Origin: Takakia lepidozioides
Taxonomy: Eukaryota; Plantae; Bryophyta
Direction of reading: 5' to 3'
Length of the DNA: 64,000 nt
Assembly: GCA_030704615.1 (NCBI GenBank)
Contig: CM060733.1
Coordinates: 33,914,001 to 33,978,000 of the forward strand
In this document: positions 1 through 55,900 of the stretch, one piece after another
How the letters are laid out: each line of letters starts with the position of its first letter
Numbering within the stretch: the stretch's first letter is position 1
The notes under the pieces: model-generated
Told to the model about the DNA's origin: nothing
The model's input: the letters and a program-made list of their open reading frames with translations, nothing else
Databases searched by the model: none
Made by a program: the position numbers and the translations under genes

Positions 1-317
1 TATGGATGAAACCCTACTATATCCATTAGGGATTATAAGAATTCCACACTAGGTATAGTATTGGAAAAAATGTTAAAATCCCAAACAAGTATCTGGAGAG
101 AGGGAGGGAGGCAGGCAGGGTGCGAGAAAAAAAAAAAGGTGGGGGGGGGGGGGGGGGGGGTGATTCAGTAGCAGCAACAGCTACTCAGTCAGTCCCCCCC
201 CCCCCCCCCCCATTTTTTTTTTTCTTCTCCTCCTCTCGCTCTCCCTCTCTTTCTCAATCTTCTATCACTCCCCAAAATATGTATATATATATATATAGAG
301 GGAGAGAGGAGGCAGAA

Positions 318-2527
318 GAGAGGGAAGATATTCATGTCATGTCAAGACATGGACAAGACCCACTAGGGTCATTGTCAATTAAAGACATAAACAACCCAAA
401 ACAGGGCACCATCTAACATTTCCATTCTTGTCATAGCTTCCCATGAATTGACATCACCCAATCAGTCATGATAAAACAGGGTGGGAGGGCGGGGTTTGTT
501 CATGTAGGGGATGCAAGCATCTTGAACACCCGAGATCTGGCCATCTTGGCCAATGAATCATTAAATTGCGATGTTACGAGCCTGGTGTCATGACAAGGTC
601 AGAATCACTGATTGCAGCACCTTACCTTATGAGCATAGGGTCATGCATCAAGCAAAACATAAGGACCAACTTGCAATATTTCAGACTCAGGACATGCCTC
701 CAAGCAATCCACTTGGGCATGAAAAAACAGATTCCATACCATTTATAATCATCCCAAGACGTGTAATCATACAAGGCGTCAAGGGAATGTGAGATCAGCT
801 TGTCATATTGCAAATTCAAGACATGTACACACAAGCATCTTGAAAACTCAGATTGCAGGTCATAGACCTGATGTCATGACAAGGCCAAAACAATAGGTAG
901 GATTTCATTACAGCTTACCATCATCATCCTTCAAGAAGTCCATGCTAAAGCTTGCAAAAAACACCTCACTATGATCCATCACACACCAGAAATAGGCCCG
1001 AAAAAGAGCAGTTCGGTTCTTTATTAGGCTGCCACCATAACATTCAAGGCCACCGCGTCCTTAGAGCCCCAAAACTGCCGAAGCATCCCCCATAAAATCA
1101 GATCCTCTTTGACCAAAAGAACTTATAACCTAGCTCAATAATCCACAGGCCCTGCTATCAAAGATCAAAAGGTAGGGTATGGTTTGTATGCAAGCCCCAG
1201 GAAACAGGCCAAGCAGGGCGAGCTGCACATCGACAGCAGAACAACAAAGGCCAAAACACAGGCTGTAGAATGCCAAACCAAGAGCAGTCGGGTTGAAATC
1301 GGGGCTGCAGACAGCAGCCACCTCACTGCGCAATAACCCACAGGTCTCCTCAGCCCATATCCCAATCTGCATGCTCAAGAAACTTCAAAGTAGGTGAGGG
1401 TCCTCACCTAGTCCCATCACAAGCCCCCACAAAAACCAACAGGTTAGTGAGGATTGTGGAACCCCGGGTGAATCACAGACCCTCACACTTGTCATCGATG
1501 TCAACTAAGAAACTCAAAAGCAAGAGAAAGAGATAAGAACATGAGAATCCATCAACTCCAAAGGCACCTTAAGCAATTGGGGAAGAGGGTTATGCGCCAT
1601 CACCACCCGCAGCAAGCCGCCTCCACAAAGCACATAAGCAATGAAGCAAAGCAGGCACAATCGCAAGGCACTAGAAAGGAGGGAGAGAACTTCCCATCAT
1701 AAGTATCCTTGCTACGCACAGAAAAAGCCAGAGGAGAGAAGATGCCACTGCATTCAAAGCGGTGTTTCCCGCTGCAAGAGAGACAAGGCGCCGCCTTCGC
1801 GTCCCTCCAAGCGCTCGTCCAGCATGGGTACGACACCACAAACGGGGCAACCACCGAAGCACGTCCGCCATAACACTCTCCTCGTGAGCTCAGAAGCACA
1901 TCACGTGCTTCTGACAGCGGGAGAGACGACATAGGGTTGTCCCCCGATTATTCATCCGTGGATGAAAAATAGTAGGACGAATCCATATACCCTGACGGAT
2001 TTCATCCGCAGCAAGGTTAAAAATAGGTTTTGGGGTAGGGATTAGGGTTTCCACCGTAATTAATCATAATTAGGGGTAGTAAAGATCAATTCAAAGATCA
2101 ATTCCAGGCCATAATCACATCATCCATAGACAGATCACTTGTGTCAGGATGAAAAAGTAGATAATATCATCCGTGGCAGCGCCTTACCTCCATCTAGGTA
2201 ATTCTATCATTCCTTACCAGACCATCCGGTATGGATAAAAATAGTCAATAAAAGAGGAATGAAAAATTATCACCCTGGTAGTTTTTCATCCGATACGGAT
2301 GGAAAAATAGGATGTTGTTGGCAACCTTCATAGAGGTAACTCTTTTCTTCCATGATGACTCATCCGGTATGGATGAGAGTCAATAAAAGAGGAATGAAAA
2401 GGCCAAAAGAACCATCCTAGAGGTAATTCAGTGTCCATCCTGGTGGCTCATCCGGTATGGATGAAAAAGCCTAATAGAGGATGAGAAAACAAGAAGCCAA
2501 CACTGATAGCAAACTGCCAATTCCCAG
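318..2527 (-). repeat. Array unit 1 (~2.2 kb, apparently non-coding)
   Basis: Begins gagagggaagatattcatgtcatgtcaagacatggacaagacc, also found at 5221. Ends caacactgata..gccaattcc, also found at ~5190-5217 and ~7938-7962. Colinear with units 2 and 3. Strand is inferred from the telo-box and the CpG-rich end. Confidence 0.85.
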
Positions 2528-2602
2528 TAGAGAGGGAGAGAGAGAGTGCATGAGAAATTCCAAAAAAAAAAAAAAAAAAAAAAAAAAAAACAGCAGCAGC
2601 AC

Positions 2603-5220
2603 CTAACACTTCCATTCTTGTCATGACTTCCCAATTGATTTCACCCAATCATTCATGATAAAACAGGGTGGGAGGGCGGGGTTTGTTTATGTACAGGTCA
2701 TGACAACAAGACAAGCATATAAGCAAGTATCTTGTGTACTGGTAAATCAGATTGCTGCAGCATGTTCAAATTCATGTAAGTAACCCAAGACATGCACCAT
2801 ACAAGGCTCCTTGGGTAGGTAAGAACAGCCTGCCCTGCTACAGATTCAAGGTATGTTCATACAATCACCTTGAAGGACCAGCTTGTAATTTACCAGATTT
2901 CAAACATGCAACCAAGTAATCTTCTTGGGCATGACAAAACATATTGCAGCTTCACTCTTTGCCATTTGTAAGTACCCCAAGACATGCATCATGCAAGGCT
3001 CCTTGGGTAGGTAAGAACAGCCCGTTCTACTACAGATTCAGGATATGTTCATACAAGTACCTTGAAGGACCAGCCTACAATTAATCAGATTTCAAGCATA
3101 TAACCAAGTAAACTTCTTGGGCAAGACAAACCATATTACAGCTTCACACTTCACCAATTGTAAATACCCCAAGACATGCATCGTGCAAGGCCTCTTGGGT
3201 AGGTAAGAACAGCCTGCCATTGTACAGATTCAAGACTTGTGTACACAAGCATCTTGATGAACTAGCTTGCAGTTTATCAGACTCCAAACATGCAACCAAG
3301 TGACCCACTTGGGCATGACAAGACAGACTGCAACTTCATTCTACACCATGTACAGTTGCCCCAAGATATGCATCATGTAAGGCATTTTGGCATGGAAGAA
3401 AGGCCTGCCATATTATAGCTTCAAGATATGGACACACATACACTTAGAGTGCCCGAGACCAAGCCCACTTGGCCAAAAAAATAAATCATACATTGCAGGT
3501 GGCTGGTCTAATGGCAAAATGAGGCAAATAATCACTGGCAAAGGTCCAGTAGAGCTTACCACCACTATTTTCCAGGAGGCTAATGCCATGTTTTGCAAAT
3601 AAAACCTCACTATGATCCATTCCACATCAAATCCAGGCCTGAAAGAGGCCTGTCATTGCCTTATCAGGCTGCCATCTTTAAAAATAGGCCCTCCTCTTCC
3701 TTAGAACCTAACAGCCACTGATGCCTTTACCCATAAACCATCATTCCTCTTTTAAGGCCAAAACTGTACCTAGTTTAAAAATCCACAGACAATGCTGTCA
3801 AAGATTCAAGACAAGGTAAGGTCCAGATGTTGGGCATCAACAGGCCTGCCAGGCCGAAATGCTCCATCAAAGGCAGCAAAACATAAGTCAAAAGTAAGCA
3901 TCAACATGCCAAACCAGGAGCAAGCAGGCCAAAATCGGGGCTGCAGGCAGCAGCCAAGTCATGACGCCATACAAAATAGGTTCCCTTTGCCCACATCTTT
4001 ATCTACAAGCTCAAGAGAATTCAAAGCAAGTAGGAATCCTCACCTGGTCCCATCACAAGCCCCCACAAAACCAACAGATTAGTGAGGATTGTGGAACCCC
4101 AGGTGAATCATGGACCCCTACACTTGTCATCAATGTCAACTAAGAACCTCAAAAGCAAGAGAGAAAGATATAAAGTAAAAGAAACCCTAATCACCAAAAG
4201 CACCTTGAGCGATTGGGGAAGATAATTGTGCGCCATCGCCACCAGCAAGCCACCTCCAGCACAACTAAGGAGAAGTGAAGCATACAAGCATCCTTGCTAG
4301 GTTTAAGAAGGGAGAGAGAGATACTTCCCCACACAAGCGCCGCTGCGAAACATAAAAGCCAAAGGAGGGAAAGAGACGATGCATTCACAGTATTGTCTCC
4401 CGCCTGTGAGAAGAGACAAAATGCCATCATTGCGCATCCCCAGGAGCTCGTCCAGCATGGGCACGAAGCAGCAGACAAGGTAACAACAAAACGCAGACGC
4501 CATAACTTTCATCCCGCGAGCTCAGAAGCACGAGGAGTACTGCTGATGGCGGGAGAGATAGCCTAGGGCCGTGCCCGATTTTTCATCTGTGCAAGATGAG
4601 TAATCAACACCACTTTTTTCAAAACCCGACGGATGTCATCCGTTAGCTAGGTTTAAACAATAGGTTATAGGGTAGGGGTTAGGATTTCACTCCTTAATTA
4701 GCCATAAGGGTAATTACTCAACAGTCCAGGGCCATCACAGACTGCATATTTCATCCGGTTCAGATGAAAAAGTCAATAAGTTCATCCAGTTGGAGAAGGT
4801 TCGTCAATAGGATGGAAAAACAGTACATAACATCCAAGGCAACGGTTTCACATCCTAACAGGTAATTCAACATCCCCAAACAAAATGCCTCATCTAGTAC
4901 GGAAAAAAACCATAAAAGAGGAATGAACAAATTAATATCCTGGAATTTTTCATCCGGTATGGATGGAAAAAATTATATATAAGATGTCAGTGTCAACCCC
5001 TACAGAGGTAATTCCTCATTCCCTGGTGACTCATCTGGTATGGATGAAAGTCAATAAAAGAGGAATAAAAAAATCATAGACTCGGTTTAGTGTCCACCCA
5101 GGTAATTTATCCAGTATGGATAAAAAATTGTTATAGGGCGGGTGAAAAAACTGTTAGAGTCCATCCGGTATAGATGGAAAAACAGGAAATCAACACTGAT
5201 AAAACCGGCCAATTCCAAGG
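2603..5220 (-). repeat. Array unit 2 (~2.6 kb; first ~95 bp of the unit missing)
   Basis: Colinear with units 1 and 3. For example, cccatcacaagcccccacaaaa..ttagtgaggattgtggaacccc occurs at ~1413, ~4049 and ~6819. Confidence 0.9.
2784..3400. repeat. 192-bp tandem repeat inside unit 2
   Basis: cccaaga(c/t)atgca recurs at 2784, 2976, 3168 and 3360. Confidence 0.9.
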
Positions 5221-7965
5221 AGGGAGGGAAGATATTCATGTCATGTCAAGACATGGACAAGACCCTACTAGGGTCATTGTCAATTAAAGACATAAACAGC
5301 CCAAAACAGGGCACCATCTAACATTTCCATTCTTGTCATAGCTTCCCATGAATTGACATCACCCAATCATTCTTGATAAAACAAGGTGGGAGGGCGGGGT
5401 TTGTTTATGTACAGGTCATGACAACAAGACAAGCACATAAGCAAACATCTTGTGTACTGGTAAATCAGATTGCTGCAACATGTTCAAATTCCTGTAAGTA
5501 ACCCAAGACATGCACCATGCAAGGCTCCTTGGGTAGGTAAAAACAGCCTGCCCTGCTATAAATTCAAGGTATGTTCATACAAGCACCTTGAAGGACCAGC
5601 CTACAATTCAGATTTCAAACATGCAACCAAGTAATCTTCTTGGGCATGACAAAACATATTGCAGCTTCACTCTTTGCCATTTGTAAGTACCCCAAGACAT
5701 GCATCATGCAAGGCTCCTTGGGTAGGTAAGAACAGTCTGTCCTACTACAGATTCAGGATATGTTCATACAAGTACCTTGAAGGACCAGCCTGCAATTAAT
5801 CAGATTTCAAGCATGCAACCAAGTAAACTTTTTGGGCATGACAAAACATATTGCAGCATCACTCTTTGCCATTTGTAAATACCCCAAGACATGCATCATG
5901 CAAGGCCCATTGGGTAGGTAAGAACAACCTGCCATTGTACAGCTTTTCATTTGGCCAATTGTAAGTACCCCAAGACATGCATCGTGCAAGGCCTCTTGGG
6001 TAGGTAAGAACAGCCTGTCATTGTACAGATTCAAGACCTGTGTCCAAGGAATCTTGCTGGACCAGCCTGCAATTAATCAGACTTCAAACATGCAACCAAG
6101 TGACCACTTTGGGCATGCCAAGACTGACTGCGACTTCATTCTACACCATGTACAGTTGCCCCAAGATATGCATCATTTAAGGCATTTTGGCATGGAAGAA
6201 AGGCCTGCCTTGTCACAACATCCAAATATGGACACACGTACATTTTGAGTGCCCAAGATCAAGCCCACTTGGCCAAAATAAATCATACAATGCAAGTAGC
6301 TGTTCAGATGGCAAAATAAGGTAACTAATAACTGGCCAGAGTCCTTTAGAGCTTACCATCACTGTTTCCCAAGAGGCTAATGCCATGTTTTGCAAATAGA
6401 ACCTCACTATGCACCATTCCACATCAAATCCAGGTCTGAAAACGGTCTGTCGTTGCATTATCAGGCTGTCTTCTTCCAGGCCTCCTCTTCCTTAGAGCCT
6501 AACAGCCACTGATGTCTTTGCCCTTACACCATCAATCCTCTTTTAAGGCAAAAAATGTACCTAGTCTAGAAATCCACAGGCAAAGCTGTCAAAGATTCAA
6601 GACATGGTAAGATTCACATGTTGTGCTGCAAGAGATATGGCTGCCAGGCCGAAATGCTCCATCAACGGCAGCAAAACATAAGTCAAAAGCAAGCATCATC
6701 ATGTCAAAACCGGGAGGAAGCGGGCCGAAATTGGGGCTGCAGGCAGCAGCAGTATGTTCCTTTTGCTCACATCCTTATCTACAAGAGAATTCAAAGCAAG
6801 TAGGGATCCTCACCTGGTCCCATCACAAGCCCCCACAAAAACCAATGGGTTAGTGAGGATTGTGGAACCCCAGGTGAATCACAGACCCCTACACTTGTCA
6901 TCGATGCCAACTAAGAACCCCAAAAACAAGAGAGAAAGACATGAAGTAAAAGGAACCCTAATCACCAAAAGCACCTTGAGCGATTGGGGAAGGTAGCTCT
7001 GCGCCATCGCCACCAACACGCCACCTCCAGCACAGCTAAGGAGAAGCGAAGCATACAAATGCTAGGTTTAAGAAGGGAGAGAGAGATATATACTTCCCCA
7101 CCCAAGCGCCGCTGCAAAACATAAAAGCCAGAGGAGGGAAAGAGACGATGTCATCACAACGGGGTCTCCCGCCTGTGAGAAGAGACAAGACGCCGCCATT
7201 GCGCATCCCCAGGAGCTTGTCCGGCATGGGCACGAAGCAGCAGACAAGGTAACAGCAGAGCTCAGATGCCATAACTCTCAGCCCGCGAGCTCAGCAACAC
7301 GATGAGTGCAGCTGACGGCGGGAGAGACACCCTAGGGCAGAGCCCGATTTTTCATCCGGAGGATGAATAATCAACACCTTTTATCTCAAAAACCCGACGG
7401 ATGTCATCCGTTAGCTAGGTTTAAACAGTAGATTATAGGGTAGGGGTTAGGGTTTCACTCCTTAATTAGCCATAATTAAGAGTAATTAAACAAATCTCTA
7501 GGGCCATCATAAGCTGCATTTTCCATCCGGTTCAGATGAAAAAGTTAATAAATTCATCTAATTTGGAGAAGGTCCATCATTAGGATGAAAAAACAGTACA
7601 TACCATCCAAGACGGCGGTTTCTCATCCTAACAGGTAATTCATCACCCCCTAAGAAAAGCCTCATCCAGTACGGAAAAAAAGGCATAAAGGAGGAATAAA
7701 ATGAATTAATATCTTGGTATTTTTCATCCGGTATGGATGGAAAAATTATAGATAGGATGCCAGTGTCAACCCCTACATAGGTGATTCCTCATTTTCTGGT
7801 GACTCATCTAGTATAGATGAAAGTCAATAAAAGAGGAATGAAAAAATCATAGACCCATTTTAGAGGTATTTTAGTGTCCACCCTGGTAGTGTCCACCCTG
7901 TCATAATCCATCCAATATAGATGGAAAATAGGAAATTAACACTGATAAAACCGGCCAATTCCAAG
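5221..7965 (-). repeat. Array unit 3 (~2.75 kb)
   Basis: High identity to unit 2 throughout, and to unit 1 at the left end. Confidence 0.9.
5502..6200. repeat. 192-bp tandem repeat inside unit 3
   Basis: The same anchor recurs at 5502, 5691, 5883, 5969 (partial copy) and 6160. Confidence 0.9.
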
Positions 7966-8185
7966 GGGGGAGGGAGAGAGAGGGAGAGAGAGGGAGAGGG
8001 AGAGAAAGAGAGAGAGGGAGAGAGGGAGAGGGAGAGAGGGTGCATGAAAAAACAAAAAAGAAGGTGGGGGGGAGAGTCGGAGAGTGACTAAGCAGCAGCA
8101 GCAGCTCAGTCAGTCTCCCCCCCATTTTTTTTATTTTTTTTTCCATGCACCCTCTCTCCGTCTCTCTCCGTCTCTCTCCCTCTGG
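7966..8185. repeat. Foldback module: (GA)n-gggtgcatg-An-Gn-core hairpin-Cn-Tn-catgcaccc-(CT)n
   Basis: The arms are reverse complements (agagggtgcatgaaaaaa / ttttttccatgcaccctct). Related modules lie at ~95-265, ~10555-10790 and ~10820-11010, with a half copy at 2528-2602. Confidence 0.85.
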
Positions 8186-10487
8186 AAACTATGGAATTGT
8201 TGTCCCAACTTCCATCCTTGAAAAATTTGAAAAATTGGGTTGCATGAAATTTGGATGTTTTCCATCCAGAATACATTTCTTTTTTCCCCCTAGTGAGACA
8301 TTTCTTTATGAGGTTTTGCTTCATCCGGACATCAACCCGGAATATATTGATTGCAAAACTCCCGTCAGTATTTATTTTTTCAATCCAACCTGGATGAAAA
8401 AAGGACTTCATCTAACAGGACCTAAATACGAGACAAGACAAGTATACATTAATTAAAAAAACCCCGATGTTTTTCATCTAACCTAGATGAAAAACGGACT
8501 GCATCCGTCGAATTCAAGACAAGATGAACACACGATGTTTTTCATCTTCCATGAATGAGAAACAGACAACGTCCGTCGGGCATACTGGCTGGTGGATGTT
8601 TTTCATCCTAATAAGGATGAATGACAAGCTAGACAGGGGAAAACCCTGCGCAACCCTAATGTCTTTCTTTTTGTGCTGCAGGAGTGCACGCAATGGCGGC
8701 TTGGAGGTAGCGATGGTGCTCGTGCTGCAGATACCATGAGCTGCCGATCCCTGAGTGTTTATGGCTCCTGTGAGCGCCGCCTCTGCGGGCTCTTTAAGGC
8801 GATGGCGGTGGCTTAGAGATGAGGGAAGATTCATTGTCTCATTTGTTTGTTTTTTTGCTGCACAAGGGAACAAGGGCAGTGATGGCGGAGATACCACCTG
8901 CCTGCTTGTGAAGTTTCCGTAGGAGCCCTCATCTGGATCTTTGATGAATGGCGACGTCTTGGTAGAACAAGGAATTCTCTCTCTCCCTCCCTTTATAAAC
9001 CCTACCTTAGGAGACAAAGCTCTTTTTTCTTGTGCTTGGCAAACTTTGCTTTTGGTTAAGGTAGCAGTGCTGTGGTGTTGGCGGAGACCTCCCTGCACGG
9101 TTGGGCTTATGGAGAGATGGCGACCATCCCCCAAACAGTAAAAAAGGTTCTTTTTCTGTTTGTCTTGCTTCCCTATTTTCTTTGGCATTCTCTGTGCTTA
9201 GATTCAAGTGTATTTGACCTCGATAGCAAGTGTGGAAGCCTGCTACTCACCTCGTGCATCCTCACTAACTCACAATGCGTTGTGGTTGTTTTTGGGACGG
9301 GCACATGTGAGGGCTTCCACTTAATATACTGATGTCTAGGTGTTGCTGGATGCCTAGTGGGTTGCAAAGCTGGGGAAGGAATCGCTGGCCATGGACTCAT
9401 CTTAAAATGTTGAAAAACTAAACTACTCTATGGTTTTTCTTGATCATACCTCTTTCCTTCCTTTATTTATGAAGAACAAGTGTAATGCTATCTACGGTGG
9501 GCTATTTCGGCCCAGCCAGTGGAAGACCTCTGCTTTGTTGTGACAACCGGGTTTATGATGGCTTGTGTGAGAGACACACATCTGTTTTCCAGGCCCTAGT
9601 TTGCTTTACTTACCTTATGGTAGTTGGAAACAAAATGAGAGGCTGCGGGGAACTGTTTGCTGCAGCTACTTGGGTACCCATGTTGGTAAAATGCCCTTGT
9701 TATGTTCCAACCCGGATGGCTTTGTTAGCTAGATGCTTAGGCAAGGGTATGGTGAAGATTCTGCTTGTGGCTATTCAGCTGACACTGAAATATGACAGCA
9801 ATATAATTGGTAACTAGTTTTTGAGGCAGCCAGGGTGGTTAAGTGGAAATACCCTCTGGACATGGTGTAATGACATGGTCAAACGTGGAATGATGTGAAT
9901 AGGGTGTGTTGACAGTATCATATACTGTCACATGATGTGTATGCAGTCATTTATTTTTACCTTGTTGTGTCATGAACTTTGATTTTCAGCTGTAGCAAGA
10001 AATAATGTTATAGGGGTATTCTGGAAAACTTACTAGACATATCCACCTCCCCTGTGGGGGCAAGCTGTGCTGTAGACTAGTTTAAACAAATACTTGCAGG
10101 GCAAGGTATTTAAATCTGTGATATCCAAGTGTTCTTTCTTCTTTTTTTAAAACAAAACCCTCTATGACACCCATGGGGTTTGAGTAAGTATGTTTGGATT
10201 ACAGCTTGCGGACAGTAAATCTGTATCACCATTTGACCTGCACCACATCAAGGCCAAAAGATGGCCAAGTACCCGCCATGCCACCCAGAGCATCAGTGGA
10301 ATACTCTTTGGGTTATGAGTAATACTGACATGAACACATTACTGTGCATGGATATAATTCTGGATTTTCTAAGCTTGGTGATTGATGGTTGGTGCCATTG
10401 TTAAGTGGCTGATATGTCTGTTTCATGACAACAACCCTAGGGGTCCTGTCTTTGTCTTGACATGACAAAAAATATCTTCCCTCTCTC
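8186..10487 (+). repeat. Diverged, inverted array unit 4
   Basis: 10430-10487 (ccctaggggtcctgtctttgtcttgacatgacaaaaaatatcttccctctct) is the reverse complement of the unit start at 318-370. 9258-9312 matches the conserved core. 8200-8660 carries the same CATCC/GGATG motif block, ending in caaccctaatgtc. Confidence 0.7.
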
Positions 10488-10516
10488 TGTGTCTTTTGTC
10501 ACCCCCTTCCCCCCCG

Positions 10517-10552
<36 letters not shown>

Positions 10553-10978
10553 AGAAGAGAGGGGGCAGAAGAGAGGTAGAGAGAGGGAGAGAGGGAGAGA
10601 GAGAGAGTGCAAGAAAAAAGAAAAAGAAGGTGGGGGGGGGGGGGGACTGACTGATCAGCAGCAGCTGCTCAGTCAGTCCCCCCCACCTTCTTTTTCGTTT
10701 TGTTTTCCTCGTCTCGCCCTCTCTCTCCCTCTCTCCCTCTTTCCCTCTCTAAACCTCTCACTTTCTCTCTCCCTCTCTCTCTGTGTCTTTTGTCACTCCC
10801 CACAAAAAAAAACAAATCGGAGAGGGACAGAGAGGGCAGAAGAGAGGGAGAGAGAGGGAGAAAGGGTGCTTGAAAAAACAAAAAAGAAGGTGGGGGATGT
10901 GTTGGGGGGGGGGTGACTGAGCAGCAGCAGCAGCTGCTCAGTCAGTCCCCCCCCCACATTTTATTTTTTTATTTTTCC

Positions 10979-11012
<34 letters not shown>

Positions 11013-11084
11013 TCCACTCCCCACAAAAAAAAAAACTAAGCAAAGAGGGAGAGAGGGGGCTGAAGAGAGGCTTGAAACATTAGC

Positions 11085-12341
11085 CCTGGAGGATTGGGTA
11101 GCTCTTGGAATTTGTGTAAACAGAGGTAGCAAGTACCTTGAAAGACTCAAGGAGTACAATGCCAAATTGGCTAAGATATTGGAACAGGATGCTAGTGAAC
11201 TGTCTTATTGGGAGGAAAAAAGAGCTGCAATTGAAGAAGCACTTAGGTTGGCAAACCCGGATAATGAACAGCCTGCTTCCACATAGAAATCTTCCAACGC
11301 CATGGAAAAAGATTTTATTCCATCAGTGACTAACCATCCTATTCTAGGACACATGATTCTGCCTGAAGGAGAAAAAGATGCAATAAGGGATTTCTGTGAG
11401 CAGGTTGAGCTCTCTCAAGTGGAGAAAGAGAGGACTGCTAGAGCAACACCTGGTAACCAACAGTTCGTCCCTTGGTTGCCTCCAAGGGCCGTGGAGCTTG
11501 AGGTAGCAAATAACGACCACATGATGTGGCACCCGCATGCAAACATCAATCTGATGGCTCCCATATCAATTGATATGTGGGTGAAATGGGCCAACCTCAC
11601 ACCTGCAGAATGCAACAGGTGTGCAGCAGATGCAAAAGAAGGCTTCCAAAGGTTAAAAAAAGAACCACTTGTGGTCTCATGGCCTTTGAGGACCTTCTAC
11701 TACAAAATGTGTGATAAGGGGGACAACATGACTTTGAGGACCAAAAATGACCTCCCGACTGGTTTAGCAAGATCTAAGAACCACAAAAGTCAGTTGTTTA
11801 ATTGGCATATGCCATACATCAGATGCAATTGTGGACAAGGTGGTGCGCCACCAGCATGCATCGAAAGTGTAGCATGGTTCGATCACATCGTTTGGTACAT
11901 GCTAAACAACCTTACGATGTTCTTCCCTGTTGATGCATTTCCTTCTATTCAGACCAAGTATTATAATTTCTTGGTGTGGATGATGAAGCTCGATCTGCTG
12001 TTCTGGCACATGTAACCTTTCAGATGACTCAAGAGATTATCATGGAGGCTGCCTGTGAGTTTGCTGCAGATCCTGAAGGTAACCGAATGCTGGTTGAATC
12101 CATCGACAAGATCCATGAAACGAACCTGCAAATCGAGGAAAAGGTAACAAAAGCGCAGGAATTCTTGTTACACACTCAACTCGATTATTTTAAGCTTCGA
12201 GACAAGGAACTAAATCAGACTCAAAAGGATATGGTCTCAGCTATAACGGGCCTCACCAAGGTAATGGGACAAGCCTTTCTAAAGAAAAATGGCATTCCAA
12301 ATGCAGATATCGACAAGGATCGTAGTAGCAACGATGAATGA
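11085..12341 (+). pseudogene. Harbinger companion (ORF2-position) gene, 5'-truncated, with a stop and a frameshift
   Basis: ORFs 11302-12015 and 11976-12341 join across a frameshift near 11975 (..YYNFLVW / DDEARSAV..). The frame extends upstream past a stop at ~11284. The gene converges on the transposase and has a coiled-coil-like C-terminus. Confidence 0.6.
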
Positions 12342-13531
12342 ATGTTGACATAAGCAGCTTGATCAACTACAATTTCCATGAGTCTTTCGACATCTGCGTA
12401 GTTTCTACTACGAATCAGATTGTGTAAAAGACAGCAAGCTGTGAATACGTCTGGCACAATGACGACGTGTAATTCAGTTTTGTGGAGCATTTCCCTGAAA
12501 GTTTTTTTCATGATTCCAAAACTATTTTCTACAACCGACCTTCCTCGCCTGTGCTTTCAATTATAGAGCAATTCGAGCACTGTAGGTTGCCCATCTCTAA
12601 AACGGTGTCATGATCCAAGAAATACAAGGATACCCTTGTCACCCAATAGGTATGGGGTAAATCCTTCTTGACAACCCTTGGCTCGGTCGAAGAGTCCATG
12701 ATACATTGCTTTGCGGTACAAACCTGAGAGGCGAAGGACTCGGTTGTCGTTCACACTCCCAGGCATGCCAACGTACAAGTCAAGAATTGTTTTTTGGCTA
12801 TCTACTACTGCCTGGGCAACCATTGAGTAACCTGAGGACTTGAAGTAGTAGTAGTCTTCTGCTCCTGGACCTGGTGGTTTTGCGATGGCTATATGCGTGC
12901 CATCTATGGCACCGTGTATGCTTGGAAGGCCATACCACTTCTGGAAGTCCTCCATAACAGTGACCATTTTATTTCCTGTTGGCCATGATATCAAATTGCG
13001 AATGGCCCTAACAACCTCTCTGATAATCAACGATACTGTGGATTTGCCAATCGCGAAGAACTCGCTGCAAGTCAACAGGTTTGCTCCTTGAGCAAGTTTG
13101 TACCGTGTGCAGCACACCCAAACTTCTACAGGAATGGCCAGGCGATATCTGGTGTCTTCTTTTCGAACATGACGTTTTATCTTGTTGCCAATGTAGAGCA
13201 CTGTATCTTTTGTCATACAAAAGTTCTGTATCCAACGTTCACTGTCATATTCGGTGACAAGAAAATGGCTGAACCATGTTGTGCTGCGTGGTTTTACCCA
13301 GTCTCCAAGCTCTGTTCCCAATACTGTGGCAAGATTGCATGACATTCTTCGAGTTCTAATGACAGAGGTCGCAAGAACAAGTTGCATGTTTGCAAGCATC
13401 GATTCTGTATCAAAATCTGGAAGAGTGAAAGGAGGAAATCCATGCGTAGCCCCCAAAGATTGAACGGACTTTTCTGACAAAAGTACAACGAATGTCGTGT
13501 ACATGATGAACTCCTCCAGCGAAAAATCCAT
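12221..13531 (-). pseudogene. PIF/Harbinger DDE transposase (HARBI1-like), disrupted
   Basis: Motifs GAIDGTHIAI, MPGSVND.RVL, YLLGDKG/YP, RSVVENSFG and CCLLHNL are present. There is a frameshift after GDKG (~12630) and an in-frame TGA at ~12558. Confidence 0.92.
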
Positions 13532-13976: not shown

Positions 13977-16371
13977 TAATCTGCTTCATCGTCAATCCCC
14001 TCAAACATATCGCCGTCATTGAGCTCGGCTTCTGCCTCCTCGATAAGGTCCTCCTCAGCACGTAAGAAATCTCAGAATGAAGTACCAATTATTGGACCCT
14101 TCGGATCCACACAACCAACTCTAGGATCAGTAGGCCAATTCTTCATGATAACAACTAGCTTGTCCAAGTTTTGAGTGCCAAGACGACACCTACGCAAGCT
14201 TGTGAGAACCCCAGTAATACTGAAAATTCGCTCAGTTTCGATATGAGATCCTGGAATACCGAGAATCTGTCGAGCAATGAAACCCACATGGGGAAATTGT
14301 GTCTCATGTGCCCTCCGCCATGCCAAAGGGTCATCCAACTTAGGATCCACTACCACACGACGAAACACGTTGAGCTCGTTCTTTAACATGGCTCTCAAAG
14401 TATCTCCACTGGAAGATGGCATCCCAAAGATGGAATCCTCCTCATTGGGGGTCGAAGCTGGAGCCTCATTGGCCAAGCTAGGGTTCAGCCATGTATATGC
14501 AGTGACAAGTAATGGCAGCAGTAGCTTAGTGTCGTATTCTAACACCAAGGCAACCATATTGTCCCTGCCACTATAATCAATCATACTTACAAGTGTCTTG
14601 TATCTGTGATCCAACATCATAGCAAGCATATTGTGCCCTTGGTGGCTGAATATCTCACAGCAAAGGAAATAAAAGGATCCAAAACAGTAACAACCTCACG
14701 CATCATGCCAAGACGCAAAAGAACCAATTCATCATCAAAATCAGGGCGAGTTTGAGGAGGAGGCCCTACGTGCTCCAAACGATAAATCTCATGCTTCATC
14801 TTGGTACATATAGTGAGAGCACCATTGAGCACGTCAGACAATAGCCAATATCCTCGATTTTGGTTCAATATGCACTGGTGCACCACTGGAACAAGTGTTT
14901 CAGCAACAATGGAAGCCACAGCCCAAGTCAGAAATGATGGGATTCGTGATTGCAAGGTCAAGGTTTGTTTGCTATAGCACAACTGAATAGCTTCACGAAA
15001 CTCCAAGGTCTCCTGAAAGAGGATTACCTTACTTGCGAAACATGTTTTCACTGGGGTTTTAAGTTTTCGAGATGGCAAGCCGACATCTTTACATGCCCTA
15101 TCTCATTCATGTCTACCTTTTCCACTTTTCTTTGGCCACGTGATCGTCTTCTGCAATGCAGCTTGGGCAGTCTTCAAGTTCACGTGCCTTAAACCAGCCC
15201 CAACCTGAATGTCATTGGTAGCATATTGACATGCCTTGGAAAATGCATGACCAAAGCAGGACCCTACAAATGGCACATTCAAGCTCAAACCATCACATGA
15301 CACAACACTGCTAAGCGCATAAGTAAGGGTGTTCAAAGTCGCACCCTCATCTTTCACAAATGCTATAATCTTGTCTGTCAAGTTATAAGTTGCCAAGAGT
15401 TGTCGCAACTGTATTGCCATGGCATGTCCTGTAGTCTCTGGAGTCTCAAAGAGTCCAGTTGTAATGTGACAGGGCTCCCATGATTCATTCAAGAAGTGCA
15501 CAACCAACACAAATTATGTATCATACCCTGATCGGGACATCCACAGATCGAAGGTAGCTGTAGCCGATACACAACCAGCAAGCGATGGTAACACATATCT
15601 CTCAAGTGTTGTTGCCACCATTTGAGGAAGAACATCCTCCACAAATTGCTTGCGGTTTGGAAATCGAACCCTCCCAGCCTGTCTGAGCATCATCCTTTTG
15701 AGCCAAGTATTTTCAACAGAAGACAAAGGCTGGTAAGTTTTGACAATGTACAAGACCAAGTCCTCATTGAAACGTTGTTGGGCTCCATCTTCCTGCTTGT
15801 AAGGGTTTTGGGAGCCAAAAAAATTAGTGATGGCCCCGGCTGCCACACCTTTCCGCTTCTTGGCACTTTGTCGTTCACCCTCAGCGGCCTTCTTGGCTAT
15901 CTTAGACTTCAATAACTCTTCTCCATGTCGATCAGTGACGTGTTTCTTTATGGCTGTTGTGCCATGCTCTTTATTTTAAGTCACGATGCCTATCCGAGAG
16001 CGGGTCGAACTCCCCTCAGTACTGCAGATTTGAGTGGCAGAATGGCATATGATGCACCTCATCAACTGGGGACTTTGCAAATCAACTTGCCCACCATCAT
16101 TCACCACAAAGAAACCCCACGATGCTGAATTTCTATGATGCACATGCCAGAATTTGAAGTTGGCTCTCAAACGAGGTAGTAACAAGTTCCACACTGCATC
16201 TGGATCAGCACCTAGTTCAGGCTCGGGCTCGGAAGCTTCATACACGATCTCACTGTCCTCAATAGCCTCATCAGTCACACGGCCTTCATACTCTGTCATA
16301 GAAATTGGGGTGATAGTATCAAGGCTGATTGCTTCTTCCAAATTTCCTCTAACCTCTGACATTGCGCACAA
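13977..16371 (-). pseudogene. hAT transposase (BED finger, DDE, hATC dimerisation domain), disrupted
   Basis: RCIIC...KKHVTDRH BED finger, TFDLWMS, FVKDEGA, CFGH, then FPHVGFIARQILGIPGSHIETERIFS. Several stops and frameshifts split it into ORFs 15976-16371, 15514-15912, 15103-15510, 14617-15078 and 14072-14629. Confidence 0.92.
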
Positions 16372-25579: not shown

Positions 25580-27127
25580 CTAATAGGGTACAACAATTGT
25601 ATCTCCTGCACACAATAAATCTCCAGCTATTATGCCATTTGCTGCTTTCAATGATTCCACTGATACCTGCACAATCCCAAAAACCAACATCCCACTCAAT
25701 TTAGTTTAGAAGGAGGCCCCACCAAACAACAAAGGTCAAGATCCTTGCATGTGTGGAACTGCTTACACTAGGCAAAGAAGTTGCTGCATGTGAGCAATGT
25801 GGCGCATTGGACACGAGGATACCAACACTACGGAAGAAAGAAGCTACTGAAGGCCGAAACTCCAGCCTGCACACACAAGATTGGGAAACGCAAACAAGCA
25901 AGCAATTTTGATTCAGGGACAGGGGCAAGAAGAGTGTCTGGATGGAAGTCGTACCCCGTGTTTTCGGGAAATGCCCCAGAGAGTGTCACCCTTGTTGACC
26001 TGAACTTGCTTGCCGTCCAGCCGTTTCTTGCTGTCTTGAGCCTTCTCATAGTAGCGGGAGCCAGTTTCCTGGGCTTTGCCCTTCACATCCCTGCTAGTCT
26101 CCTGCACACCGCCCTTCAGTTCCCTCCCCTTCTCCAGCAAGGTGCCCTTCAAATCCCTGCTAGTCTCCTGCACACCGTCCTTCAATTCCCTCCCCTTCTC
26201 CTGCAAGCTGCCCTTCAAATCCCTTCCACCGTCTTCCACACTGCCCTTAAAGTCTTTCCCCTTATACTCCGCCTCTTTACCCTTGTTTTCAAAGCTCCTC
26301 TTCACCTCCCGGCCCTTCTCCTCTGCACCAGCCTTAGCCCCCCAACTCTTGTTCTCGGTCTCCTGGCCCTTACCCTCGAAGGTGCTCTTCACGCTTCTGC
26401 CTGCTCCTTCCAAGCTGCCCTTTAGTTCGCTCCCAGCATTTTTCAATGTGCCCTTTATATCCCTGCCGGCGCTCTCAAAACTGCCTTTCGCGTCCTTACG
26501 CTTATCCTCCGCGTTGTCCTTAAATTCCCTGCCCTTCTCCTGCATCCGCACATTGACCTTCAGACAGTGAATATTTTTCTTGTTCACCTCCCTCACCTTG
26601 CTGACAACAACCTCTCTGGGGAAAAAACAAGATATAATTGATGATCAACAATGACAACAAGCTTTAAATCCTCGAGCGAAAATGTTGCTGGAGCAAGTTT
26701 CTTTTAACATCCCTTCTTGTCTTTCACGAATATGCTGCATACATCCGCCTCACGTCTTGTATGTTATCTAATCTTCTTAAAACAGCTCCACCAGCAACAA
26801 CTGTCATTTTGTGAAAGTCTGCCGCAAGCGACAGCAGGTAGTAGTTTAGAGGAATTCTATACACACCTTGGATGCGCCCCAAACGTTGGAGGCATCCCTG
26901 GATAAGTCCTCTCCAGATTCTGACAGAGGTTCTTCGCCCTTTTGGTAGTTGCGGATTCCTTTGTACACGGTCCAGGCAATGCCAGCTGCAACCACCACAC
27001 CTGCAGCCTTGGCTATGTTCTCATCTACCCCACAGCCGCCCTTGTCGCCCTTTTCACCCTTCTCTCCCTTTGGCCCACGATGACCGGCTCCATTAGGAGC
27101 TGCAGGGGCAGCACCGGCGGCTGACAT
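25580..27127 (-). CDS. Single-pass membrane protein with Gly-X-Y triplets, group 3 LEA-like 11-mer repeats and a C-terminal LysM domain
   Basis: Exons 27127-26867, 26539-25955 and 25666-25580 splice in phase 0 with GT-AG. LysM reads VQVNKGDTLWGISRKHG|VSVESLKAANGI..DLLCAGDTIVVP. The 11-mers include EKGRELKGGVQ and ETSRDLKGTLL. Confidence 0.85.
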
Positions 27128-52932: not shown

Positions 52933-55900
52933 ATGCCTTCGGGGCCAAAGAAGCGGAAAGCAGCCAGGAGAAGGAAGCAGGGGTCTCCGGGTTCGCCATA
53001 TCTTGATGGTCACAGCGATGTGCATTCGGGTGTGTTTTCTTGGGCATACTCTCTCGTCGTCCTGTCGGTATGGATCGTTGTGCATTTTGGGTTTTCTGCG
53101 GTTCTGTGATTGTTCCAGTATGCTGCTTGTGCTCATAGTTTGATGGATTCTCTCCGTGATTCAGAGATGGATCCCACTTGCCCGTGAGATGGATCTCACT
53201 GAGTGGGGTAGTCGATGACATGCACTTGACTGGTATATTTTTTCCGGTCGTTTTGGAGGAGGTGGTGAGGGCTAATCTGGTTATGGTGCTTACAGTTGCG
53301 CTCTTGTTGTTTGCAGATAAGGACACGGAGAGGGCGTCGGTCGGTGAATCTCACTTGTCGGATGAAGGCATACCGAGCCCCGACGCGTCTGAAGTAGTGA
53401 ACCGGAGATTGGAGTTGGACACGAAGGAGGGGGCGTCTTTCCAAACGGAGGAGTGGGTCAGGGTCTCGGATTTTGATGTGGGCACTCCTACGTCAACCAC
53501 AGCTCACTCGAAGGTTGATTACGATGGAGCTGCGGAGGATAGCTGTGGTGATGCAAGGGATCATGACAAGCTGGCTGATTGGGAAACGGTTTCCAGGTAC
53601 ACTGGCGGAGGGGAGTCTTCTGCCGAAGACGTCACTGATATTCTGGATGCAGACCAACTGGTTGTTGACGATGAAGGGAAGTCACCGAGCGAAGGCCATG
53701 GAGAGGAATCCGGCAGTGGATTGTTACGTGTGAGCGAGGGGAGTTTCGAACTTCCTTCATCAGATAAGCAAGACTATGGAGAGCACAACAATGGCTGTGC
53801 CAAGGAGGAAGACCGTGCCAGCAGTATTGTGGTAGTAACGTCGGAGGATCAAGATTCATCTCTGCACAGCAGCATCGTCGAAGTTACTTCGCAGGAGGAT
53901 GATGACCATGCTAGCAGTATTGGGGAAGTGGCTGAAGAGCAAGAAGATGAGGGACGGACCTGCACTACTGCCCATGAAGAAGAGGACGATGGAGACCAAT
54001 CCAGCAACAGCGGGGAGCTTGCTTTACCAGAAAAAGACAAAGGTTGGAGCTTTCAAACTGCTGGAGTTTCTTACCCGGAGAAGCCTGAGGATGAAGAACA
54101 AGCCAGCAGAATTGAGGAAATCGTTTCACAGGCAAAGCAGGAGGACGGAAATCCGGGTGCTGGGGACGTAGATGGGGGCGATGGGGGACCTGGAACAACG
54201 GAAGTATATTCACGAGATGGGGAAGACCGAGCCAGCACTGCTACGGAGAACCGAGTGGATGAAGGCCAAGTCAGCTGTGCTTTGGAAACACCAGTGGAAG
54301 AAGAGGGAAGCATTGAAGCTGTAGAATTCACTCCACCAGGGAAGGAAGACGATGAGGACCAAGTAAGGATTGGTGCTGAAGTTCATACCCCAGGAAAGGA
54401 AGAGGACAAAGATCGAAGCATGGAAACAGTGGAGATCGCTCCGGCAGAGGATCAAAAAGTCATTCGAGAAGCTGCAGAGTTCACTCCACCAGAGGAGCAA
54501 GATGATGAGGAGCAAGAAAGAAATAGTGGGGAAGTTTCTACCCCAGGAAAGGAAGAGAACGAAGATCAAGGCAGTGGAACAGTGGCGGTCTCTCCTTCAG
54601 AGAGTTACGAAGATGACCATGGCAGTCCCATTGCTGAGCTCACTTCAGCTGATAAGCTAGGGGATGAAGAGGGTCACCTCTCTATTTCTAATGTTTCTCT
54701 TCTTCTGCAACAAGAGGAAGAAAGACTAAGCATGGATACTACAAAACCTCCTGCTGACAAATTAACCAGTATAGAAGCATCTTGTGGTGAGGTGTATTTG
54801 CAACCTGTAGCAGTTGAGGCCACTCCTTTGAACGAAGAGAGTGACGAGCTGCATGATGCCACCTTGAGGGTAGATGCTCTACCCACTGATGGACAACAAG
54901 AGTTTAGTGACTCTGGGCCTGGAGGGAAAATTGGGATGGTAGAGACTGACAGTACGACGAGCCACTCGGAGGAGAAAGAGGCCACTCCCACCGCACAACC
55001 TTCAAGTGGAGATCTTGGTGTAAGTCCTGATGCTACATTAGCCAAAGGAGAGGAGGCGGATAGCTTGGTGCACACCAGCAGTGAGCCTGGTGCTGAATTG
55101 CCAAATGTGGATGCTGAACCAAGTAAGGATGCTGATGCCGCAATTTTATTCGGCAAGGGACTCAACATAGGTAGCCCTGGAGGACCTGCGATCTACCTTT
55201 TTCACTTCAACTCAGTACCTTCAGTAAAGTCTGAGGTGAGTCCGTAAGCCTGTAGCAATTTCCAGTTATACGTTTATTTTTTGAAAGTTGCTATGTTTGA
55301 AATCTTGATAATGTCCAAGCATTGAGTTAGCAAACTATTGCTCTAATTGTTTGGGTATTACTGTACGTCGTCTCACCCAGCCCTCAACAGGTCTTGAAAT
55401 TGTCATTCACAACCAGAATATGCTGGTATTCAAACAAAAGAGTCCAATATTTTTGGCAGGGCTATGTGTGGTAGTATGACACACTAACAGGTTTTTGAGA
55501 CATTACAGCTGGAGTTGTTTGTCTCTAAATGTGCATGTTATTATCAAGTGGGGAAAGCTCCCTGCACGGGTACTGGGAGTACTAGGGTATGTTAGAATTT
55601 CATTCTGAAGAGAATAAGAACCTGTGTATCCATGATTGCCCACAATTGAAATGAGGATGACAATGGCCCTCAAGAATAAGCATGTATATGGCGTTTTAGG
55701 CTTCACAAACAACCTTCTTGTTTTTCCTGATTGAATACCAAATGTTTACCTTTGCTGAGTCTTCCCCTATCGACATAGAAACTCAGTTGTTCGCACCCTT
55801 GGGAACTGACGCAGTCAATGGTGGTAGTCAAAGAAGTCACTGTTATGCAGGATATAGTTGATTGTCTGGCACTCTTAAATTGACTAGTCTGAGTTCTGAG

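Follow-up and report, generated by a model that had tools for sequence, protein, structure and literature searches.

The first 11 kb of a 64,000-nucleotide stretch of the moss Takakia lepidozioides (GenBank assembly GCA_030704615.1, contig CM060733.1, positions 33,914,001 to 33,978,000 of the forward strand; the whole 64 kb is hereafter called the window) are taken up by an array of long non-coding units, most of them separated by palindromic, GA-rich spacers, and the array continues beyond the left end of the window. It was delineated in the 64-kb window by self-comparison, with BLAST blocks and a profile of the three direct units (nhmmer). Three units (u1–u3) lie head to tail, essentially where a preliminary description of this DNA had placed them, and a fourth (u4) is inverted; their sizes are 2.2–2.8 kb. 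The units, spacer modules and linkers are given below in window positions; the long homopolymer runs (G20, C18, A29, A35) may not have reliable lengths.

1–95, + strand: possible tail of a further unit (u0), with a half-hairpin and tail-like motifs; homology to the other tails is not demonstrable
96–255: spacer module P1, consisting of a GA-rich tract, A-run, G-run, CAGCAGC centre, C-run, T-run and CT-rich tract; folds as DNA at −60.4 kcal/mol (z −9.8)
256–313: linker, CT-rich, then TCACTCCCC, an A/TA run and a GA-rich part with the end GGCAGAAGAGAGG
314–2527, + strand: unit u1, with a single copy of the inner 192-bp repeat
2528–2602: half module, with the left arm, A29 and the centre CAGCAGCAGC, followed by position ~95 of the u2 head
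2603–5217, + strand: unit u2, without the first ~95 nt of the head
5218–7965, + strand: unit u3, joined to the u2 tail via GGAGGGAGG alone
7966–8185: spacer module P2, between u3 and u4, which meet here tail to tail
8186–10487, − strand: unit u4, inverted and very diverged, with head, mid-block and tail hairpins recognisable
10572–10750: spacer module P3, after u4 and preceded by a linker with A35
10835–11010: spacer module P4, with linkers on both sides, in the block 10488–11070

Units u2 and u3 share 88–89% identity (Kimura two-parameter distance, K2P, 0.117) and u1 is 68–69% identical to either of them (K2P 0.43), in agreement with the clear divergence between copies noted earlier. The inverted copy at 8186–10487 is real, but it is ~50% identical to the other units globally and can be aligned in blocks only. 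The profile of u1–u3 detects, colinear and inverted, a head block (10500–10382, E 1.4e-11) and a mid-block (9323–8926, E 9e-15), with which the BLAST blocks agree, and these two are the only significant ones, a third block in the tail (8562–8478) being weak (E 0.09). Positions 1–95, which had been taken for the end of a further copy, gave local alignment scores against the four tails within ~2 standard deviations of shuffled sequences and no nhmmer or BLAST match, and that assignment is not confirmed. Nothing similar to the unit or the module was found in the remaining 53 kb of the window, and two scans of metagenome contigs for exact patterns, a 21-nt head word in one and a 22-nt spacer-centre word in the other, gave zero matches. 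The heads of u1 (314–506) and u3 (5218–5411) are 96% identical, inside units otherwise 69% alike, and this ~190-nt patch looks like a later gene conversion between non-adjacent members of the array. The copies are old and have diverged in place, and their graded ages fit slow local growth with no recent burst.

The unit has a set order: two stem-loops side by side in the head, a well-kept stretch, 192-bp repeats, a body of ~1 kb and tail subrepeats. The features recognised within them are:

333–351 (u1), + strand: head stem-loop H1, its 6-bp stem kept in u4 via two double changes
352–376 (u1), + strand: head stem-loop H2, kept in u4 via two G-U pairs on the unit-sense strand
5237–5281 (u3, + strand) and 10469–10427 (u4, − strand): equivalents of H1 and H2
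408–506, also 2603–2700 and 5313–5411, + strand: best-kept head stretch, with CCAAT-like, A-rich TATA-like and GC-box-like words
661–867 (u1, one copy), 2775–3430 (u2, 3.4 copies) and 5493–6183 (u3, ~4 copies), + strand: inner 192-bp tandem repeat, with short CCAAG..CTTGG palindromes
1372–1570 (u1), ~4008–4205 and ~6782–6977, + strand, with the u4 part in 9323–8926, − strand: slow mid-block
1394–1486 (u1), 4030–4121 (u2) and 6800–6892 (u3), + strand, and 9320–9232 (u4), − strand: mid hairpin of ~95 nt
1876–1925 (u1), 4507–4558 (u2) and 7276–7327 (u3), + strand: second hairpin, with an alignment fold of z −8.8; not evident in u4
~1950–2490 (u1), 4580–5185 (u2) and ~7350–7930 (u3), + strand, and ~8230–8640 (u4), inverted: tail block of degenerate ~90-bp subrepeats, with a TCATCC-N5-GGATGA hairpin in each; 15 of the 20 matches to this motif in the window lie inside the array

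The units show no sign of coding capacity, as had been supposed. Substitutions between copies lack three-base periodicity and indels do not come in threes, and the 21 open reading frames (ORFs) of the units, including one of 224 aa in u4, have no Pfam match at E ≤ 0.1 (0.01 for one ORF); the enzymes that the preliminary description had suggested looking for (HUH/Rep, recombinase, reverse transcriptase (RT), DDE) are thus not among them. The 224-aa ORF has no homologues in the protein collection searched and none of ten window ORFs was found there by exact sequence, in a collection that seems to lack this species and its close kin (the relatives of a PIF fragment in the window are 44–61% identical). 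Base composition is strand-specific (A 0.33, T 0.21–0.23, C>G) and flips with the orientation of u4, and is therefore a property of the unit. CpG depletion is alike in the units, the neighbouring transposon remains and the PI4K gene of the window, and does not discriminate between them.

Most of the unit has diverged heavily, and two blocks have not. The stretch 408–506 is 91% identical to u2 and 96% identical to u3, the latter value falling inside the conversion patch, against 66% for the rest of the unit, and includes a 21-nt word identical in u1–u3; from its sequence words it might be promoter-like. Between u1 and u2 or u3 the mid-block retains 84% identity and the remainder of the unit 66% (Fisher p 5e-8 to 8e-8). 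Only this block and the first ~120 nt of the head (u1 297–418) are significantly detectable in u4, where the slow blocks are 62–76% identical.

Within the mid-block, each of the four copies folds into the ~95-nt hairpin (z −2.6 to −4.0), and 93.5% of alignment cells are paired. Six pairs have changed on both sides compared to 2.4 in shuffled alignments (0 of 500 reach six), while slid controls give 0–1. Its 8-bp outer stem is perfect both in u1 (GTGAGGGT with ACCCTCAC) and in u4 (GTGGAAGC with GCTTCCAC), which differ by four double changes; when all four copies are taken together, both sides of five of the eight pairs vary. Run against the 64 kb, a covariance model of this hairpin returns the four known copies and no others. 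Pairs kept by compensatory change, the general mark of a structured non-coding RNA gene, are thus present in the mid hairpin and in H1, over four copies; we regard such pairing as suggestive of constraint, not as proof of it.

Known RNA families gave no match: Rfam yielded zero matches at gathering scores in the window and zero at E ≤ 1 in u1, and no ribozyme was found at gathering scores or among the 150 matches listed at E ≤ 1 over 1–11200. The spacer module scores ~60 bits on two microRNA models derived from miniature inverted-repeat transposable elements (MITEs), MIR1858 and MIR1437, on both strands, compared to gathering scores of 137–168 bits, and these are generic hairpin matches below threshold.

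A palindromic module of about 160–190 bp is present four times, at 96–255, 7966–8185, 10572–10750 and 10835–11010, as first described. An alignment in both orientations shows a common plan, which leads from a GA-rich tract through GGGTGCATG, an A-run and a G-run to a centre of approximately ACTGACTGAGCAGCAGC and its complement, and on through a C-run, a T-run and CATGCACCC to a CT-rich tract. The arms carry specific words beyond the low-complexity runs, making this a true inverted repeat that folds as single-stranded DNA far better than shuffled sequences (z −9.8 for P1; a second value is −10.5). The GA tracts flanking the units belong to this palindromic spacer (~170 bp) and an ~80-bp linker. 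The linkers after P3 and after P4 are the same as that at 256–313. Here module and linker are repeated in tandem, with a period of ~263 bp and without an intervening unit; the joint of linker and P4 (10751–10834) resembles an unfilled copy of the site at which a head starts, and the array edge at 11070 falls exactly at such a site. Taken alone the module is a near-complete foldback and in this recalls foldback elements and palindromic MITEs, from which the array differs in that no target-site duplication is visible in its GA-rich flanks, the unit lacks inverted ends and the module arms are decaying. Similarity between the two arms of one copy (0.63–0.68) is no greater than that between arms of different copies (0.58–0.67), which argues that the hairpin is decaying and not maintained.

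Three junctions are head to tail (u0?/u1, u1/u2 and u2/u3) and one is tail to tail (u3/u4). The u1/u2 junction retains only the left arm, the A29 run and the centre of a module; the joint shares GCAC, consistent with a ~250-nt deletion by microhomology. The u2/u3 junction (~5215–5222), the youngest, consists of the 9-nt GA stretch GGAGGGAGG with no module at all. The module therefore does not border both ends of every unit. Unit ends are constant: the head starts with GAAGATATT directly after ..GAGAGG in u1, u3 and u4 (the start of u2 is deleted), and the tails of u1–u4 end ..CCAATTCC(A/C)AG just ahead of the GA tract, the unconfirmed fragment at 1–95 excepted. Read in one direction the unit ends are thus GAAGATATT.. 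and ..CCAATTCCAAG, in the other CTTGGAATTGG.. and ..AATATCTTC, with flanking bases G/G (C/C in the other direction). As first described, no TG..CA ends are present.

We propose, with a probability of roughly 0.45, that a structured non-coding transcription unit was multiplied locally, long ago, by unequal exchange between its GA-rich spacers, and that one copy of the resulting array was flipped through the symmetry of these spacers. To judge from the pattern of conservation, the unit would either be transcribed into a structured non-coding RNA or be a cis element that depends on its hairpins; we infer that it may be transcribed, and in which direction, as well as the route of recombination, from sequence comparison. 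Units flanked by direct GA-rich repeats are a substrate for unequal exchange, and the u2/u3 junction shows the product expected of it; the direct copies would thus have come from unequal exchange or slippage between flanking GA tracts. A microhomology deletion of ~250 nt may have removed half a spacer and the start of u2. Since the spacers are symmetric, opposite arms of two spacers form inverted repeats, and exchange between them flips the unit and leaves normal-looking junctions such as u3/P2/u4; u4, the oldest copy, was most likely inverted in this way. That a symmetric structure accounts for both orientations, as the preliminary description held, is reasonable for the inverted copy, but the symmetry would act through ordinary exchange between spacer arms and not as a terminus of the unit. 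The 190-nt patch would later have been copied between the heads of u1 and u3. Most unit sequence has decayed freely while the first ~190 nt and the ~200-nt mid-block resisted, their stems kept by compensatory double substitutions.

Among known systems, arrayed plant non-coding RNA genes (clusters of microRNA (MIRNA) or hairpin-RNA genes) resemble this locus in their protein-free unit, an imperfect hairpin of ~95 nt, pairing kept while sequence changes, and local arrangement in an array. Unlike in MIRNA clusters, the unit is much larger than the usual primary microRNA transcript, contains two further hairpin arrays and has no Rfam match, and a 6-nt deletion in the hairpin arm of u4 leaves no 21-nt stretch conserved in all four copies.

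Several points weigh against the proposal. Of only four copies three are close, and most of the covariation comes from comparing u4 with these three. Both strands can form the hairpins, and neither fold energies nor G-U pairs point consistently to one of them. The slow blocks could in part be old gene conversion, the promoter-like words were identified by eye, and no Rfam family matches the unit. The constant unit ends, and the edge at 11070 on a head-start site, would also fit an inserting element.

Such an element, a non-autonomous one landing repeatedly in GA/CT-rich tracts and stacking in tandem, driven by rolling-circle/HUH enzymes (Helitron- or Replitron-like) or by a long interspersed nuclear element (LINE), with the terminal stem-loops as enzyme recognition site, is in our view an unlikely explanation but the foremost of the alternatives. 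It would account for unit ends that are constant wherever readable (head after ..GAGAGG in u1, u3 and u4, tail ..CCAATTCC(A/C)AG in u1–u4), for an array that stops exactly at a head-start site, for the seemingly unfilled site at 10751–10834, for two conserved stem-loops no more than 60 nt from the 5' end, and for the strand-specific, A-rich composition of the unit. The constant ends and the edge are accounted for just as well if spacer and unit were duplicated together. We place mobility second because no inverted ends, target-site duplication, primer-binding site, Helitron ends, enzyme remnants or young copies were found: the youngest junction shows no terminal inverted repeats, target-site duplication, primer-binding site or poly(A), Helitron ends and their A/T target are absent, the 21 ORFs contain no remnant of Rep, RT or transposase, no copy lies elsewhere in the 64 kb, and the copies have diverged in place over a long time.

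A narrower version would make the unit a non-autonomous moss element of the rolling-circle type (HUH, Replitron- or Helitron-like), its twin 5' stem-loops a Rep recognition site and the arrays products of read-through or repeated insertion; it seems to us improbable. HUH elements, as Helentron-borne tandem arrays illustrate, can leave tandem arrays. Non-coding derivatives of rolling-circle/HUH transposons (Helitrons, Replitrons) can also be kilobase-sized, with terminal hairpins and insertion in one orientation by a short target (PMC10288648). In the present units, unlike in these, the hairpins are at the 5' end as oriented, Helitron termini and A/T target are lacking, no Rep lies nearby and the copies are old. 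Replitrons occur in mosses, and their non-autonomous copies may outnumber coding ones (PMC10288648). They have short direct repeats at both termini, a right-end hairpin, orientation-specific insertion after a short target and a Y1 Rep partner (PMC10288648). The heads here always follow ..AGG, which is trivial in a GA tract, and carry hairpins; no short direct terminal repeat of the units was identified, and there is no Rep in the window. Replitrons are hence the closest candidate driver that can be named, and nothing links them to this array.

Other classes of element were considered and rejected on their structural hallmarks. A Helitron should have 5' TC, 3' CTRR, a hairpin 10–12 nt before the 3' end and insertion at A/T, none of which is seen. 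Non-autonomous cut-and-paste transposons (MULE, hAT, CACTA, PIF) and foldback elements were discarded for want of an inverted head–tail match in any unit; both unit flanks are GA-rich and of low complexity, and a short target-site duplication would be invisible there. Long terminal repeat (LTR) retrotransposons, solo LTRs or an array of terminal-repeat retrotransposons in miniature (TRIM) do not fit the lack of TG..CA ends or GA tracts that are palindromic and far longer than a polypurine tract. Searches for telomere-like words and a primer-binding site returned nothing usable, the one word resembling a primer-binding site having two mismatches, lying on the wrong strand and inside the unit.

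Slightly less probable than an inserting element is a neutral segmental duplication (macrosatellite) without function, whose hairpins and slow blocks would merely be what remains of a palindrome-rich ancestral sequence or of gene conversion. Much of the array has this character: the units are kilobase-sized and head to tail, their similarity is graded with age, and the junctions lie in short repeated tracts, as in macrosatellites, with which the array also shares a conversion patch and inner 192-bp subrepeats that vary in number (1, 3.4, ~4). To this extent the earlier notion of an amplifying element is borne out, a segment having been amplified in place. The junctions fit unequal exchange and microhomology deletion, the patch 314–506 versus 5218–5411 (96%) fits conversion, the spacers decay neutrally and the neighbourhood is rich in transposon remains. 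Unlike in a macrosatellite, one unit is inverted across a palindromic spacer, and uneven decay and compensated stems point to a constrained product. Rate heterogeneity is strong in two independent comparisons, the slow blocks are 62–76% identical in u4 and hence not recent conversions, and in u1 and u4 alike the mid hairpin has a perfect 8-bp outer stem despite four double changes. Heterogeneity of rate together with compensatory stems disfavours pure neutrality.

It is highly improbable that the array is a replicon or cassette ending in a symmetric hairpin of ~200 bp, the preliminary description having offered rolling-hairpin concatemers, recombinase cassette arrays and Penelope-type partial tandems as models. 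The module is indeed a strong, true palindrome, and it lies at one head-to-tail junction and at the inversion junction; in having a palindrome at the tail-to-tail junction u3/u4 the array resembles concatemers of the parvovirus type. As a terminus, though, it fails: of the three direct junctions one has half of it and another none, it occurs twice in tandem without a unit, and its arms are not maintained. Unlike in parvovirus-type concatemers, head-to-head and tail-to-tail junctions do not alternate, the remaining junctions being head to tail, the palindrome is not at every end, no HUH gene of the Rep/NS1 type or other coding capacity is present, and the units are 12–50% diverged. A recombinase cassette array is contradicted by junctions that differ from each other, where short conserved core sites would be expected, and by the absence of a tyrosine or serine recombinase gene, and Penelope-type tandems by the absence of RT, a GIY-YIG domain and a ribozyme. 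Finally, long homopolymers and palindromes are hard to assemble, yet copies that differ by 12% to ~50% with many indels make a duplication by the assembly implausible, and we give an artefact almost no credence.

The rest of the window holds genes and transposon remains. Directly right of the array edge lie two overlapping orphan ORFs of 237 and 121 aa (11302–12341, + strand) with no Pfam match, the larger of which had no homologue in a word-index protein search. The only recognisable enzyme remains near the array are a PIF/Harbinger DDE transposase fragment (12608–13531, − strand; DDE_Tnp_4; best relatives 44–61% identical) and hAT transposase remains spread over several ORFs (14072–16371, − strand), of which Pfam recognises only the C-terminal dimerisation domain. 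A repeat-rich segment at 25781–26596 is open on both strands; its minus-strand ORF of 227 aa would encode a K/G/E-rich repeat protein with weak apolipoprotein/YtxH-like matches and, at its end, a borderline LysM match (21.4 bits versus a cutoff of 20.9, over the first 18 of 43 profile positions). The region 31769–~50000 (+ strand) is occupied by a PI4-kinase alpha gene of many exons, with PI4K_N and PIK domains in several exon ORFs and a T-/G-rich sense strand whose skew is opposite to that of u1–u3. A 689-aa ORF without a Pfam match (53178–55247, + strand) lies in the most GC-rich part of the window (53%) and is overlapped by long antisense ORFs. No tRNA genes were found in the window.

The structure of the array is real, and the evidence for a function of its unit is modest. 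On the features compared here, a hairpin-rich, protein-free unit of a structured non-coding, gene-like family that grew through GA-rich palindromic spacers is the most likely identity. If the constrained hairpins mark a transcribed product, this would be a bryophyte family of structured non-coding genes that has not been described before and is arranged in old arrays. A mobile unit would instead be a passenger without proteins, unusual in its preference for GA/CT tracts, and should the HUH-element reading be true, this would be the first anatomy of such passengers in bryophytes. Either way, the locus shows cleanly how symmetric spacers of low complexity drive the duplication, deletion and inversion of intervening DNA.

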